A stretch of 64,000 nucleotides of DNA. Source: Macrostomum lignano (taxonomy: Eukaryota). Shown one piece after another: positions 40,398 to 51,032 of the stretch. The notes under the pieces are model-generated. The model was not told where the DNA came from, searched no databases, and was given only the letters and a program-made list of their open reading frames with translations. The position numbers were made by a program, and so were the translations under genes. Within the stretch, counting starts at the first letter, position 1; each line of letters starts with the position of its first letter. The stretch lies in assembly GCA_002269645.1 (NCBI GenBank), contig NIVC01001771.1, positions 175,473 to 239,472 on the forward strand, read 5' to 3'.

Positions 40398-40476
40398 ATG
40401 CACAGTAGCCGGCCAACTGACCGCTGCTTCCTAGCGATTCTGCTTCCGTTCCTGTTTACAATGTCAGCTTGTAGTG
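40398..40476 (+). CDS. Lectin-like/Ig membrane receptor, exon 1 (signal peptide)
   Basis: MHSSRPTDRCFLAILLPFLFTMSACS+G|gtaagt; phase 1 matches exon 2. Confidence 0.75.
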
Positions 40477-40494
40477 GTAAGTTTATTCCTGACT

Positions 40495-40985
40495 TATTGG
40501 GGAGCTGTAGGGGGTACTGTTGTTGGGGAGCTGTAGGGGGTACTGTTGTTGGAGAGCTGTAGGGGGTACTGTTGTTGGGGATCTGTAGGAGTACTGTTAG
40601 GGAGCTGTAAGGGACATTGTTGGAGAGCTGTAGGGGGTACTGTTGTTGGGGAGCTGTAGGGGTACTGTTGTTGGGGAGCTGTAGGGGTACTGTTGTTGGG
40701 GAGCTGTAGGGGTACTGTTGTTGGGGAGCTGTAAGGGTACTGTTAGGGAGCTGTAAGGGACATTGTTGGAGAGCTGTAGGGGGTACTGTTGTTGGGGAGC
40801 TGTAGGGGGTACTGTTAGGGAGCTGTAAGGGACATTGTTGGAGAGCTGTAGGGGGTACTGTTGTTGGGGAGCTGTAGGGGTACTGTTGTTGGGGAGCTGT
40901 ATGGGTACTGTTGTTGGGGAGCTGTAGGGGGTACTGTTGTTGGGGAGCTGTAGGGGGTACTGTTGTTGGAGAGCTGTAGGGGGCA
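40495..40985. repeat. 26-bp minisatellite (GGGGAGCTGTAGGGGGTACTGTTGTT)n, intron 1
   Basis: About 19 copies with variants. Confidence 0.93.
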
Positions 40986-41062
40986 CTGCTGGGCTGTGCG
41001 CTTTGTCTTAGCTTTGGCCTACGAGTGAAAGGAAGCATTCGGCAATTTCCTTTTTTACTCAG

Positions 41063-41290
41063 ATGGCAAAATCGCGGTGCGGCAGGCTCAGATCGCCCAG
41101 TCCTGGCAGTCGAGCGTCTACACCGGTAACGAAGACTACTGCTTCATGATGCGGCCGAGGTCGCTGGGCGACTGGAACTACTTCCACTCCGGGGAGGAGC
41201 CCGACGCCTCCGGCTATCAGTGGCTGCTGATAAAGCTGGCCAAGCCTGCGAGACTGGTGGCCGTCACTGTGTTTGCCAGGCCTGGGGAAT
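41063..41290 (+). CDS. Receptor exon 2 (F-type-lectin/discoidin-like domain, N-half)
   Basis: tttactcag|; AQSWQSSVY...YFHSGEEPDASGYQWLLIKLAKPARLVAVTVFAR resembles the FTP pattern QSS..HT..PWW.VDL..V..V.I..R; donor t|gtaatc. Confidence 0.75.
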
Positions 41291-41299
41291 GTAATCCAT

Positions 41300-41735
41300 C
41301 TGTCTGTCTGTCTGTCTGTCTGTCTGTCTGTCTGTCTGTCTGTCTGTCTGTCTGTCTGTCTGTCTGTCTGTCTGTCTGTCTGTCTGTCTGTCTGTCTGTC
41401 TGTCTGTCTGTCTGTCTGTCTGTCTGTCTGTCTGTCTGTCTGTCTGTCTGTCTGTCTGTCTGTCTGTCTGTCTGTCTGTCTGTCTGTCTGTCTGTCTGTC
41501 TGTCTGTCTGTCTGTCTGTCTGTCTGTCTGTCTGTCTGTCTGTCTGTCTGTCTGTCTGTCTGTCTGTCTGTCTGTCTGTCTGTCTGTCTGTCTGTCTGTC
41601 TGTCTGTCTGTCTGTCTGTCTGTCTGTCTGTCTGTCTGTCTGTCTGTCTGTCTGTCTGTCTGTCTGTCTGTCTGTCTGTCTGTCTGTCTGTGTGTCTGTC
41701 TGTCTGTCTGTCTGTCTGTCTGTCTGTCTGTGTCT
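41300..41735. repeat. (TGTC)n microsatellite filling intron 2
   Basis: About 105 units. Confidence 0.97.
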
Positions 41736-41765
41736 ATCTATCTCTATCTATCTATTGACTTGCAG

Positions 41766-47196: not shown

Positions 47197-47274
47197 GTGA
47201 GTGAATTGTGCATGTCTGAGGACCGTCTCGGGGATCCGGGGGTGGCCGCGTAGCAACTGAGCATCTACGGGCGG

Positions 47275-49330
47275 TTACCCAGCAACTGAGGATCTGAGAA
47301 TTTTAGGGTTGCCCAGCAACTGAGGATCTGGGAGGGTTAGGGTTGCCCAGCAACTGAGGATCTGGGAGGGTTAGGGTTGCCCAGCAACTGAGGATCTGAG
47401 AATGTTAGGGTTGCCCAGCAACTGAGGATCTGAGAATATTAGGGTTACCCAGCAACTGAGGATCTGAGAATGTTAGGGTTACCCAGCAACTGAGGATCTG
47501 AGAATGTTAGGGTTACCCAGCAACTGAGGATCTGAGAATGTTAGGGTTACCCAGCAACTGAGGATCTGAGAATGTTAGGGTTACCCAGCAACTGAGCATC
47601 TGAGAATATTAGGGTTACCCAGCAACTGAGGATCTGAGAATGTTAGGGTTACCCAGCAACTGAGGATCTGAGAATGTTAGGGTTGCCCAGCAACTGAGGA
47701 TCTGAGAATGTTAGGGTTACCCAGCAACTGAGCATCTGAGAATATTAGGGTTGCCCAGCAACTGAGGATCTGAGAATGTTAGGGTTACCCAGCAACTGAG
47801 CATCTGAGAATATTAGGGTTACCCAGCAACTGAGGATCTGAGAATGTTAGGGTTACCCAGCAACTGAGGATCTGAGAATGTTAGGGTTGCCCAGCAACTG
47901 AGGATCTGAGAATGTTAGGGTTACCCAGCAACTGAGGATCTGAGAATGTTAGGGTTGCCCAGCAACTGAGGATCTGAGAATGTTAGGGTTACCCAGCAAC
48001 TGAGCATCTGAGAATATTAGGGTTGCCCAGCAACTGAGGATCTGAGAATGTTAGGGTTACCCAGCAACTGAGCATCTGGGGAGGGTTAGGGTTACCCAGC
48101 AACTGAGGATCTGAGAATGTTAGGGTTACCCAGCAACTGAGGATCTGAGAATGTTAGGGTTGCCCAGCAACTGAGGATCTGAGAATGTTAGGGTTACCCA
48201 GCAACTGAGCATCTGAGAATATTAGGGTTACCCAGCAACTGAGGATCTGAGAATGTTAGGGTTACCCAGCAACTGAGGATCTGAGAATGTTAGGGTTACC
48301 CAGCAACTGAGCATCTGAGAATATTAGGGTTACCCAGCAACTGAGGATCTGAGAATGTTAGGGTTACCCAGCAACTGAGCATCTGGGGAGGGTTAGGGTT
48401 GCCCAGCAACTGAGGATCTGAGAATGTTAGGGTTACCCAGCAACTGAGCATCTGAGAATATTAGGGTTACCCAGCAACTGAGGATCTGAGAATGTTAGGG
48501 TTACCCAGCAACTGAGGATCTGAGAATGTTAGGGTTGCCCAGCAACTGAGCATCTGAGAATATTAGGGTTACCCAGCAACTGAGGATCTGAGAATGTTAG
48601 GGTTACCCAGCAACTGAGGATCTGAGAATGTTAGGGTTACCCAGCAACTGAGCATCTGGGGGAGGGTTAGGGTTGCCCAGCAACTGAGGATCTGAGAATG
48701 TTAGGGTTGCCCAGCAACTGAGGATCTGAGAATATTAGGGTTACCCAGCAACTGAGGATCTGAGAATGTTAGGGTTACCCAGCAACTGAGGATCTGAGAA
48801 TGTTAGGGTTACCCAGCAACTGAGGATCTGAGAATGTTAGGGTTGCCCAGCAACTGAGGATCTGAGAATGTTAGGGTTACCCAGCAACTGAGGATCTGAG
48901 AATGTTAGGGTTACCCAGCAACTGAGGATCTGAGAATGTTAGGGTTGCCCAGCAACTGAGGATCTGAGAATATTAGGGTTACCCAGCAACTGAGGATCTG
49001 AGAATGTTAGGGTTGCCCAGCAACTGAGCATCTGAGAATGTTAGGGTTACCCAGCAACTGAGGATCTGAGAATGTTAGGGTTACCCAGCAACTGAGCATC
49101 TGAGAATATTAGGGTTACCCAGCAACTGAGCATCTGAGAATATTAGGGTTACCCAGCAACTGAGGATCTGAGAATGTTAGGGTTACCCAGCAACTGAGCA
49201 TCTGAGAATATTAGGGTTACCCAGCAACTGAGGATCTGAGAATGTTAGGGTTACCCAGCAACTGAGGATCTGAGAATGTTAGGGTTACCCAGCAACTGAG
49301 CATCTGGGGAGGGTTAGGGTAGCCCAGAAA
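47275..49330. repeat. 33-bp minisatellite (CCAGCAACTGAGGATCTGAGAATGTTAGGGTTA)n, intron 10
   Basis: About 62 copies, each with TTAGGG. Confidence 0.96.
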
Positions 49331-49493
49331 CAGGATCTTACCCAGAAACTGAGGATCTGCGATAACGGCTCCAGCTGGGAGAATTTTGCTGTACGAACAT
49401 TGTACATTTGACCTTCCGGGTATTACTGCATTACCAATTAATAGTTGCTATGCTCGCCTACCTTGATCAATTTCATCAACTATCCAACTGCAG

Positions 49494-49683
49494 AGTCGGA
49501 CAAACGCCAGCAGCCTGGAGATCAGCTCGCTGAACTCCCTGACCTGGAGCTTTGACCCGATGCCACTTCCGGCGAAAGCTCTGGATAGGAAAATACTGTG
49601 CACCGTGTATCAGGCAGACCAAACCAGATTTCAATCCGAGCACAGTGCACTGTTTGAGACCGGCACAGCCAGCGCCTGTGAAG
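49494..49683 (+). CDS. Receptor exon 11 (Ig-like, juxtamembrane)
   Basis: actgcag|SRTNASSLEISSL...DRKILCTVYQ...ACE+G|gtgaga. Confidence 0.82.
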
Positions 49684-49984
49684 GTGAGAGCGGCTAACTT
49701 TGACCTTCGTCCCCACAAGCCCGCCGCTGATTCCTGAGCACATATACATGTAAGCGCGCCAATTAGCTGTACGCGCTCATACACTTTCTAATCGTCAGGC
49801 ATGTGGCCTAAGGGGTTCGTGCTGATTATTGTGAGTCACAATAAGTCTGATAGTCAGCCATACGCTCGTATGGGGGTCGCCATTGAAATATCCGTATTAC
49901 ATGGCATGAGACATATATTTTTATTTATAAATCTTTCTGCATTAGTTAGTTATTACATTGGGCCTTATGATAACACATGCTTGG

Positions 49985-50144
49985 GCGCAACCTTGGGATT
50001 CACCTGGCCGTTTCTATTGGCAACACACACACGTACGTCGCTATTGGACAGAATGGTAGTCACATGACTGACTGCTCTCAGCCAATAGCGACTTACATGT
50101 GTGTGTTGCCAATAGAAACGGCCGAGTGATTCCCAAGGTTGCGC
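49985..50144. repeat. About 63-bp inverted repeat pair forming a 160-bp hairpin (MITE-like)
   Basis: 49985-50047 is the near-perfect reverse complement of 50082-50144. Confidence 0.8.
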
Positions 50145-50571
50145 ATGTATCAGATGTTATCAGATAACACGTACATGTACATCAGGAATCGCGGCAAACT
50201 TTTTTTAAATCAAGAACCAGATAGAGAACCTACATGTAGAGCATGACTGTGGGCCAGAGGGGAGGGAGAAGAGAGGAGAGAATTGGGAGAATTGATCAAG
50301 AAGGGAGAGGAGAGGAGATTCGAGAGAAAAGATCGAGCTGAGAAGAAACAGTAGACACAAACCTTGATTAGAAGCTTCGCCGGCCGGATTTTGCCGACCC
50401 CGGATATTCACGTAGTACATTTAGCGACTAAGTTTTATTCATCTGGTTTAAGTGAAGTCAATTTGCGCACATTTGCAGTTTTCTAGTCAGAGAGTTCCTC
50501 TCTCTGATTGTGACATCTTAAACCTTACAAATACAAGAATTAAGAGCTATAGCTCGATTGAACTCTCGCAG

Positions 50572-51032
50572 TTGGAGTTGATCTCTGGAAAATCGGCCTA
50601 ACAGTAATCGCCGTAGCGGTGGCGGGGCCATTCCTGCTCGCCTGCTTGAGATCAGTTCTGAGGTGCTCCTATCGCAAGCTGACCCAGTACAGGCGAGGCA
50701 GCTGGTCGCCATCAGAGGTTCCCATGGCAACCTACAGCCGGGGCAAGGACTGCGCAAACGTAGATCTGGACGGGCTATCAGCGGACGAACTCTGGGGCGT
50801 CAATAGCGGCAGCGGTGCGGCATCGACGTGCAACACCCTGCTGAATGGGTGCGACGTCGGGCGGCGAGCCGAGCCATTCGGCAATCGACAAGAGGCAGCA
50901 GCGACGGTCCCGGACGTTGTCTATGCCCAAGTGCTGAAGGTCAGCGGTGATGCTCGGCAGCAGGAGGAAGTGAACAAGTCGGCTGCCAGCTTGGCTACCG
51001 AGTACACAGAGATTGTGAAAAGCAACGCCTAA
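50572..51032 (+). CDS. Receptor exon 12 (TM helix plus cytoplasmic tail with ITIM/ITSM-like motifs)
   Basis: ctcgcag|; IGLTVIAVAVAGPFLLACL followed by basic RSVLRCSYRK; VVYAQV and TEYTEI; stop at 51032. Confidence 0.82.

Follow-up and report, generated by a model that had tools for sequence, protein, structure and literature searches.

What kind of protein is encoded by a gene of the free-living flatworm Macrostomum lignano whose predicted product combines a lectin-like N-terminal head, an immunoglobulin (Ig)-like stalk and a cytoplasmic tail ending in two tyrosine motifs of the type found in vertebrate immune receptors? We analyzed this gene in a 64,000-nt stretch of the M. lignano assembly GCA_002269645.1 (contig NIVC01001771.1, positions 175,473 to 239,472 of the forward strand), hereafter the window, to which all coordinates refer unless another contig is named. 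As judged from its sequence, the locus is a real, transcribed and selectively constrained gene for a cell-surface protein, predicted to be a type I membrane glycoprotein. We put at about one half the probability that this protein acts as a recognition receptor at the cell surface and that its C-terminal tyrosines, when phosphorylated, would dock SH2-domain proteins, the best fit by analogy being a phosphatase of the SHP-2/Corkscrew type. The architecture is established; the functional claim rests on two short motifs and on a lectin-like fold with a broken binding site.

Joining exons from the raw sequence and its three-frame translation gave 13 exons between 40398 and 51032 on the forward strand, all bounded by GT–AG introns and with consistent phases. 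The product of 804 aa is the same, residue for residue, as family member P0004, the GenBank protein PAA64249.1 (hypothetical protein BOX15_Mlig034318g3, Macrostomum lignano). A first-pass annotation made from the letters alone had come close with 12 exons and about 820 aa, figures that are corrected here, and the signal peptide, single transmembrane helix and both tyrosine motifs that it had located are all present. It had also recognized no named gene, in agreement with the purely hypothetical status of the GenBank entry: the protein by itself had no Pfam match even at E ≤ 10 and no sequence match in the PDB in single-sequence searches. The GenBank annotation of the assembly was built from RNA-seq-based, genome-guided transcript assembly, and because the exons are annotated there as one transcript, they are considered to be co-transcribed (PMC5730564). 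Two other candidates were rejected during model building. An acceptor AG for exon 6 at 43248, which would yield an 827-aa product, was dropped in favor of 43317, which reproduces the annotated protein exactly (junction between DLRV and LPVSRP), and an in-frame open reading frame (ORF) upstream of exon 7 (44491–44636) allows no in-phase join and is absent from the annotated transcript. Only two stretches of the protein are hydrophobic, namely the signal peptide, which corresponds exactly to exon 1, and residues 656–680, which are followed by RSVLRCSYRK; a type I topology is predicted on this basis, with an ectodomain of 629 aa carrying four NxS/T sites and a cytoplasmic tail of 127 aa.

As far as sequence databases show, the gene is one of a multigene family that appears restricted to Macrostomum, and every annotated member comes from M. 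lignano. A HMMER scan of 1.84 billion representative proteins returned 16 matches, of which all those looked up were M. lignano proteins (four others were not looked up), and a search with a profile of the head domain added two further M. lignano members. A word-indexed search returned only the protein's own cluster, and a rerun with the full-family alignment returned only 2 proteins. The paralogues are 30–38% identical, have the N-terminal domain in common and contain from one to about seven repeats of the stalk module; several carry the UniProt name 'Ig-like domain-containing protein'. Only one relative of the head domain lacks an attribution to M. lignano, namely an intronless 211-aa ORF (284–919) on a 1.6-kb contig of JGI metagenome 3300040801 (Ga0450804_0569779). 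This ORF contains TWQSS...CF...YFH...GYHWF and is a hint that at least one eukaryote besides M. lignano has this head family.

To characterize the head, we compared the sequences of all PDB chains with a profile derived from the heads of 12 family members. FBP32, an F-type lectin of striped bass, ranked first (3cqo; E = 2.7e-6), with matches in both its lectin domains, followed by eel agglutinin AAA (1k12; E = 0.029), the lectin domain of lectinolysin (Sm-hPAF; E = 0.28–0.41) and, fourth, the pneumococcal fucolectin-related protein SP2159 (2j22; E = 1.0). The remainder was noise, and no other fold ranked above these matches. An AlphaFold2 (AF2) model of residues 24–205 is a beta-sandwich with a predicted local distance difference test score (pLDDT) of 65.9 and a predicted template modeling score of 0.73. 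In Foldseek, this model matched the F-type lectins lectinolysin (4gwj/3lei), FBP32 (3cqo) and AAA (1k12) with E values of 3.5e-5 to 7e-5 and TM-scores of 0.37–0.51; over all galactose-binding-like matches, which also included CBM32, discoidin/F5_F8C, SUN and APC10 domains, E ranged from 2e-5 to 1e-3 and the TM-score from 0.37 to 0.55. Paralogue heads match the Pfam family F5_F8_type_C below threshold. The modeled fold class of the head (about 175 aa) is thus clear, a galactose-binding-domain-like jelly-roll, and the 'FTP/discoidin-like' domain proposed by the first-pass annotation is borne out by both the profile search and the predicted fold. The assignment to the F-type subclass is made because of the sequence profile, and the head is best described as a diverged F-type-lectin-like domain.

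The stalk (residues 204–655) was modeled with an alignment of 15 paralogue fragments. The model is all-beta, with pLDDT values of about 55–84 for domain B (residues 317–443; 70–84 over most of it), 73–88 for domain C (444–542) and about 41–59, mostly 50–59, for domain D (543–651), while the Cys-rich domain A (204–316) stays below 50 and its fold is uncertain. Nearly all of the top 30 Foldseek matches of the stalk were ectodomains of the immunoglobulin superfamily (IgSF), the best being SIRP-gamma (1e-7); others included ICAM-5 D1–D4, RAGE VC1C2, ICAM-1, PirB/LILRB3, titin and Axl. A profile iterated from domain C matched 2–7 repeats in each paralogue, and paralogue repeats homologous to domain C reached the cut-off of Pfam C2-set_2 (21 bits) in P0015 (21.4) and P0009 (21.0). 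At E ≤ 1, C2-set_2 was found in 6 of 17 members, whereas the window protein has no such match. Comparison with hhalign related domain B to C (E = 1.2e-4) and C to D (E = 1e-4) and found domain A unrelated to domains B–D. No paralogue repeats were recruited by jackhmmer seeded from domains A and D, and the stalk profile found only noise among PDB sequences (TNFSF11, SecB; E > 0.2). Each of domains B–D has an F-strand-like Cys (SIRCYS, IVCQV, ILCTV), and another conserved Cys follows a P.P..H motif (HSCLL, HTCSL, VLCGV; GNPEPSHRCW in paralogues), as read from the alignments. This first conserved Cys thus appears to lie where strand C is expected, not in strand B as in textbook Ig domains. Every Ig-like domain is spread across two exons (phases 0/1/0). 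Taken together, the models and sequence comparisons support three tandem Ig-like domains in the stalk; of the roughly four repeats initially proposed, B, C and D are supported, whereas the first, encoded by exons 5 and 6, is not established.

The tail contains five tyrosines, and the last two, Tyr769 and Tyr796, lie in VVYAQV, which fits the immunoreceptor tyrosine-based inhibitory motif (ITIM), and in TEYTEI, which fits the immunoreceptor tyrosine-based switch motif (ITSM). TEYTEI is nearly the vertebrate motif TEY(S/A)(E/T)(I/V), and the 27-residue spacing between the two tyrosines resembles that of vertebrate tandem-SH2 docking sites. When the tail was shuffled 200,000 times with its composition preserved, an ITIM arose in 21.5% and an ITSM in 2.8% of the shuffles; both arose together in 0.44%, and with a spacing of 15–35 residues in 0.13%. 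The two motifs are kept in all three full-length copies of the gene, which at 98–100% identity are uninformative on conservation. Among diverged paralogues, P0023 ends in DVTEYLDIV, which contains the ITSM-type string TEYLDIV, 18 residues after EFYINS, in both of its genomic copies. The probability that any of five paralogue tails would carry such a motif by chance is 0.07 for an ITSM and about 1e-3 for TEYxxI. Other paralogue tails have different tyrosine strings, such as a twin SVYV(D/S)D in P0026 and YYYEENP in P0006.

In the proposed mechanism, the head would recognize an extracellular ligand, possibly a glycan, although not through the canonical fucose triad, and the Ig-like stalk would hold it clear of the membrane. 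A Src-type kinase could then phosphorylate the two C-terminal tyrosines, at which SH2-domain proteins would dock. Because the motif types and their spacing resemble those of vertebrate receptors, the tandem SH2 domains of a SHP-2/Corkscrew-type phosphatase would be the best fit, and the receptor would accordingly be modulatory or inhibitory.

Several observations weigh against this reading. Both AF2 models, head and stalk, are of moderate confidence (pLDDT 66 and 61) and were built from shallow alignments of 12–15 paralogue fragments. In F-type lectins, fucose is bound through the motif HX24–26RXDX4(R/K), with the basic triad His52, Arg79 and Arg86 in AAA (PMC5712786, PMC5297725). A motif scan found the strict motif in no family member. 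In the alignment of AAA with the head profile, His52 is replaced by Pro (EEPD) and Asp81 by Gly; both arginine positions are kept, Arg79 as the Arg of FARPGE and Arg86 as the Arg of KRRA. The stretch aligned with Cys82–Cys83 (RPGELKRR) lacks the Cys pair, and a calcium motif of the h2DGx type, (V/A/I)(V/A/I)DG(N/D/S), does not occur in the head, where the nearest string is VYTGNED. Such motif deviations may mean changed specificity or lost sugar binding (PMC5712786, PMC5297725). Sugar binding by the head is therefore uncertain, given that the fucose motif, the calcium motif and the Cys pair are all missing, and the glycan-sensing role suggested earlier is still hypothetical with the canonical fucose triad broken. 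In the tail, both motifs also fit the consensus of YxxΦ endocytic signals (Yxx[LIVMF]). Finding both motifs in any single protein is unusual, but a proteome with tens of thousands of genes should contain some tails of this kind by chance. The homologues give a mixed picture of how far the tyrosine motifs are conserved: the ITSM-type string recurs in the distant paralogue P0023, whereas an ITIM is found in none of the five diverged paralogue tails (P0006, P0015, P0021, P0023, P0026), and the window tail does not align with that of P0023 beyond the motif. The full-text literature and the supplements of M. lignano papers yielded no expression or functional data on the gene under its identifiers, including Mlig034318, and searches for a SHP-2 partner in M. 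lignano (PTPN11 and PTPN6 in paper supplements, SHP-2 terms in the literature) found nothing.

Considering that both tyrosine motifs, as well as a third, membrane-proximal string in the tail (YRKL), fit the sorting consensus, the protein could instead be an adhesion or recognition molecule in which YAQV and YTEI are read by AP-2 and control endocytosis or trafficking of a surface lectin–Ig protein. The paralogues that lack an ITIM consensus yet have varied tyrosine-containing tails are consistent with this explanation, as is the presence of adhesion molecules and the like (ICAM-1, ICAM-5, titin) among the closest fold matches of the stalk. By contrast, the recurrence of TEY(T/L)(E/D)IV in a distant paralogue speaks against sorting, since the Thr at −2 and the Glu at −1 are not needed for YxxΦ, and the location of the motifs at the far C-terminus with a 27-residue spacing is typical of tandem-SH2 docking. 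We regard the sorting explanation as the foremost alternative, and as an unlikely one.

A further explanation holds that the tail motifs are functionless chance matches; the tail would then merely anchor a surface glycoprotein with a structural or ligand-binding role. Both motifs have just six residues and degenerate positions, a single ITIM arose in 22% of the tail shuffles, and the five paralogue tails that lack an ITIM are otherwise unalignable. The joint occurrence of the two motifs (P = 0.0044, or 0.0013 with the right spacing) and the recurrence of TEYxxI in a paralogue (P about 1e-3) argue against chance, as does the constraint on the tail described below, and we consider this explanation improbable.

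Selection was assessed by comparing genomic copies. The same 13 exons map without gaps onto two other contigs of the assembly (L001 and L002), where the transferred exons give the annotated proteins PAA49974.1 and PAA46231.1 exactly. A gene for poly(A)-binding protein lies downstream on the minus strand on both contigs, as it does in the window, and the three copies are therefore syntenic duplicates or homeologues. Near-identical copies are expected for the DV1 line, in whose assembly blocks with 95% identity or more add up to 180 Mb (PMC5730564). The copies differ at 8–14 of 804 residues (98–99% identity), with no clustering of the changes. The ratio of nonsynonymous to synonymous substitution rates (dN/dS) among the three copies is 0.15–0.21 overall, 0.16–0.26 in the head and 0.12–0.18 in the stalk; the counts behind these values are small (8–14 nonsynonymous and 15–22 synonymous changes) and their direction is clear. 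In the transmembrane helix and tail, dN/dS is the lowest of the gene (0–0.11), which speaks against a functionless tail, but this value comes from just 0–1 nonsynonymous changes. These sequence comparisons clearly point to purifying selection on the gene and to no hypervariability. It is thus very unlikely that the protein is a polymorphic determinant of self/non-self or gamete recognition under diversifying selection, as in Botryllus or Hydractinia, even though the family is lineage-restricted, expanded and variable in its number of Ig-like repeats, F-type lectins act in fertilization and self/non-self recognition in other phyla (PMC5712786), and ITIM-bearing allorecognition receptors are reported from Botryllus (PMC12582321): besides the low dN/dS and the very few differences between the copies, which disfavor the allorecognition role entertained at first, a tblastn search of the protein against the 64-kb window found no second copy, tandem paralogue or cluster of related receptors, and the neighbors are housekeeping genes.

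The paralogues share the head and Ig-like modules and differ in their tyrosine-containing tails, and they look like receptors wired to different intracellular adaptors. A broader and rather doubtful extension of the receptor reading is that Macrostomum independently assembled a diversified immune-type receptor family from a fucolectin-derived head, Ig-like stalks of variable length and alternative tyrosine-motif tails, the last represented by ITIM plus ITSM in the window protein, pYxN plus ITSM in P0023 and a twin SVYVxD in P0026. If true, this family would parallel the paired inhibitory and activating families of vertebrates (Siglecs, LILRs, SIRPs) and would be the first of its kind in Platyhelminthes.

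Some of the paralogue models call for comment. The family member P0023 is short, consisting of the head, one Ig-like domain and a transmembrane helix. At the loci of P0023 and P0018 (L003, 6001–8128; L004, 6001–8131), a terminal micro-exon encoding SRRLNGDVTEYLDIVSIGVVRQPK follows a 65-nt GT–AG intron in both cases; it is used in only one GenBank model, PAA92527.1, and the other, PAA53557.1, ends in ...KLFRKA. Four UniProt entries (A0A1I8...; P0006, P0016, P0019 and P0024) from an older assembly resemble fusions of adjacent genes, and paralogue names such as Mab-21, MATH, fibrinogen and IRS-PTB stem from the fused neighbors. The P0006 model starts with the tail of an upstream family member, which suggests that at least one subfamily lies in a tandem array elsewhere in the genome.

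The immune checkpoints of vertebrates depend centrally on ITIM and ITSM signaling through SH2-domain phosphatases; to our knowledge, the use of these motifs by recognition receptors outside deuterostomes is poorly documented. If the receptor reading is true, this flatworm family, with its F-lectin-derived head, its Ig-like modules and its tyrosine motifs of checkpoint type, would offer a clean example of receptors assembled by convergence, and Ig would be a new domain partner in the F-type lectin repertoire. If the motifs are instead sorting signals or chance matches, there would still be a well-supported, lineage-restricted family of surface proteins that standard annotation has left as 'hypothetical'. 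M. lignano is open to transgenesis and RNA interference, so that the hypothesis is directly testable. The exons and motifs of the gene are listed in Table 1.

Table 1. Exons of the receptor-like gene and tyrosine motifs of its tail, in window coordinates.
Feature	Position	Strand	Remarks
Exon 1: start codon and signal peptide, aa 1–26 (MHSSRPTDRCFLAILLPFLFTMSACS)	40398..40476	+	Hydrophobic core CFLAILLPFLFTM; donor gtaagt; ends in phase 1
Exon 2: first part of the F-type-lectin-like head, aa 27–102 (WQSS...YCF...WNYFH...GYQWLLIKL...VTVFARPGE)	41063..41290	+	Head profile matches FBP32 and eel agglutinin
Exon 3: middle of the head domain, aa 103–175	41766..41983	+	Columns EVLL..P.GL..C..CG.T..V.C kept in paralogues
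Exon 4: final strands of the head, aa 176–203 (LTRFILLRRLVRDQADKIFNFVGLEIEE)	42091..42175	+	AF2 strands at model residues 153–161 and 172–181
Exon 5: Cys-rich segment, first half of domain A, aa 204–271	42959..43161	+	AF2 pLDDT <50
Exon 6: second half of domain A, aa 272–316 (CPQCGLRCSYRCSG)	43317..43452	+	Acceptor 43317 as annotated
Exon 7: first half of Ig-like domain B, aa 317–385	44637..44842	+	AF2 pLDDT; Foldseek IgSF matches
Exon 8: second half of Ig-like domain B, aa 386–443	45688..45862	+	hhalign, B vs C, E = 1.2e-4
Exon 9: first half of Ig-like domain C, aa 444–497	45944..46104	+	AF2 pLDDT 73–88; profile matches paralogue repeats
Exon 10: second half of Ig-like domain C, aa 498–542	46820..46955	+	VAIVCQVNQSG, F-strand-like
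Exon 11: first half of Ig-like domain D, aa 543–588 (TTGGIPPPNSVLC)	47060..47196	+	All-beta model; hhalign, C vs D, E = 1e-4
Exon 12: second half of Ig-like domain D, aa 589–651	49494..49683	+	AF2 model; hhalign
Exon 13: transmembrane helix (aa ~656–680), 127-aa cytoplasmic tail and stop codon	50572..51032	+	Hydropathy peak of 2.43 at IGLTVIAVAVAGPFLLACL, then a basic stretch
VVYAQV (Tyr769)	50916..50933	+	Fits ITIM, (I/V/L/S)xYxx(L/V/I); also YxxΦ sorting consensus
TEYTEI (Tyr796)	50997..51014	+	Fits ITSM, TxYxx(V/I); tyrosine 27 residues past Tyr769

Seven of the 12 introns each contain a different tandem array, located at 40497–40982, 41299–41731, 42258–42930, 43532–44470, 44901–45590, 46194–46676 and 47273–49306, with units of 26, 4 (TCTG, 108 copies), 54, 4 (TTAG, 235 copies), 34, 22 and 34 bp, respectively; apart from the two 4-bp arrays, copy numbers reach 60. 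These arrays fit the tandem-repeat content of 15% reported for the M. lignano genome (PMC5730564). Intron 11 measures 2297 nt in the window, 1099 nt on L001 and 2531 nt on L002, and such length differences between near-identical copies presumably arise from the copy number of tandem arrays. Intron 12 contains a 63-nt inverted repeat (49985–50047 and 50082–50144; 92% complementary, with 34 nt between the arms), which may be a hairpin or an insertion resembling a miniature inverted-repeat transposable element. The neighboring genes are unrelated. They encode the poly(A)-binding protein (54758–57160, minus strand; three to four RRM domains and MLLE), the splicing factor SF3A3/Prp9 (16678–18477, minus strand) and fragments of rhodopsin-type G-protein-coupled receptors (498–1241 and 9867–10574, both minus strand). 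Retroelement remnants lie at 31779–33742 on the minus strand, with an RNase H ORF at 33326–33742, and at 61468–62315 on the plus strand, with an integrase ORF (rve and zinc-binding domain) at 61719–62315. A 15-bp satellite (ATGGGGATCTGGGGA) occupies 1946–4201 with 151 copies at a 98% match and creates spurious ORFs of 500–750 aa in all three plus frames.

How does the flatworm protein compare with known receptor systems? CD33-related Siglecs share with it a type I topology, a ligand-binding head on a stalk of C2-type Ig domains and a tail in which an ITIM precedes a motif of the TEYSE(I/V) type, a likeness that is one of analogy only. The Siglec head is an Ig V-set domain with a sialic-acid-binding arginine, whereas the flatworm head is jelly-roll and lectin-like. 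Because its head is not a V-set domain, the protein is not a Siglec, and searches of Pfam, PDB sequences and the HMMER protein scan revealed no Siglec homology. The Siglec-like convergent inhibitory receptor envisaged by the first-pass annotation thus holds at the level of architecture and of the motif analogy in the tail, while the Siglec identity falls and the term 'inhibitory' depends on two short motifs.

PECAM-1, PD-1, SIRP-alpha and PirB/LILRB are IgSF receptors whose paired ITIM/ITSM motifs recruit SHP-2 or SHP-1. They share with the flatworm protein a string of Ig-like ectodomains and two C-terminal ITIM/ITSM tyrosine motifs, in their case about 25 residues apart. The flatworm protein differs from them in its extra non-Ig head, in its highly diverged Ig-like domains without a Pfam match and, as read from the alignments, in the first Cys of these domains, which follows PxPxxH rather than lying in strand B. 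Mollusc FREPs and related lectin–IgSF proteins are another lineage-specific expansion that, like the flatworm family, joins IgSF modules to a lectin-type domain. FREP-type proteins are secreted, with the Ig part N-terminal and the lectin part C-terminal, whereas the flatworm lectin-like domain is N-terminal and sits on a predicted membrane receptor. The use of ITIMs and ITSMs outside vertebrates is documented for fester and uncle fester of Botryllus and for an ITIM/ITSM-bearing leucine-rich repeat (LRR) receptor of amphioxus (PMC8211107, PMC12582321); the HMMER protein scan revealed no homology of the flatworm protein to these families or to FREPs.

The closest relatives by sequence profile are the F-type lectins (AAA, FBP32 and the lectinolysin of S. 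mitis), with which the head shares both a profile match and the jelly-roll fold. Drosophila Furrowed likewise places a domain resembling the F-type lectin domain (FTLD) on a stalk of repeated modules with a transmembrane anchor (PMC5712786). From these lectins and Furrowed the flatworm protein differs by its incomplete fucose triad, its Ig-like rather than CCP stalk and its tail with ITIM and ITSM. In eukaryotic FTLD mosaics, the partners are CTLD, pentraxin, CCP, FA58C and transmembrane segments, and Ig is not among the frequent ones listed (PMC5712786). The combination of an FTLD-like head, an Ig-like stalk, a transmembrane helix and an ITIM/ITSM tail would thus be a new arrangement of known parts.

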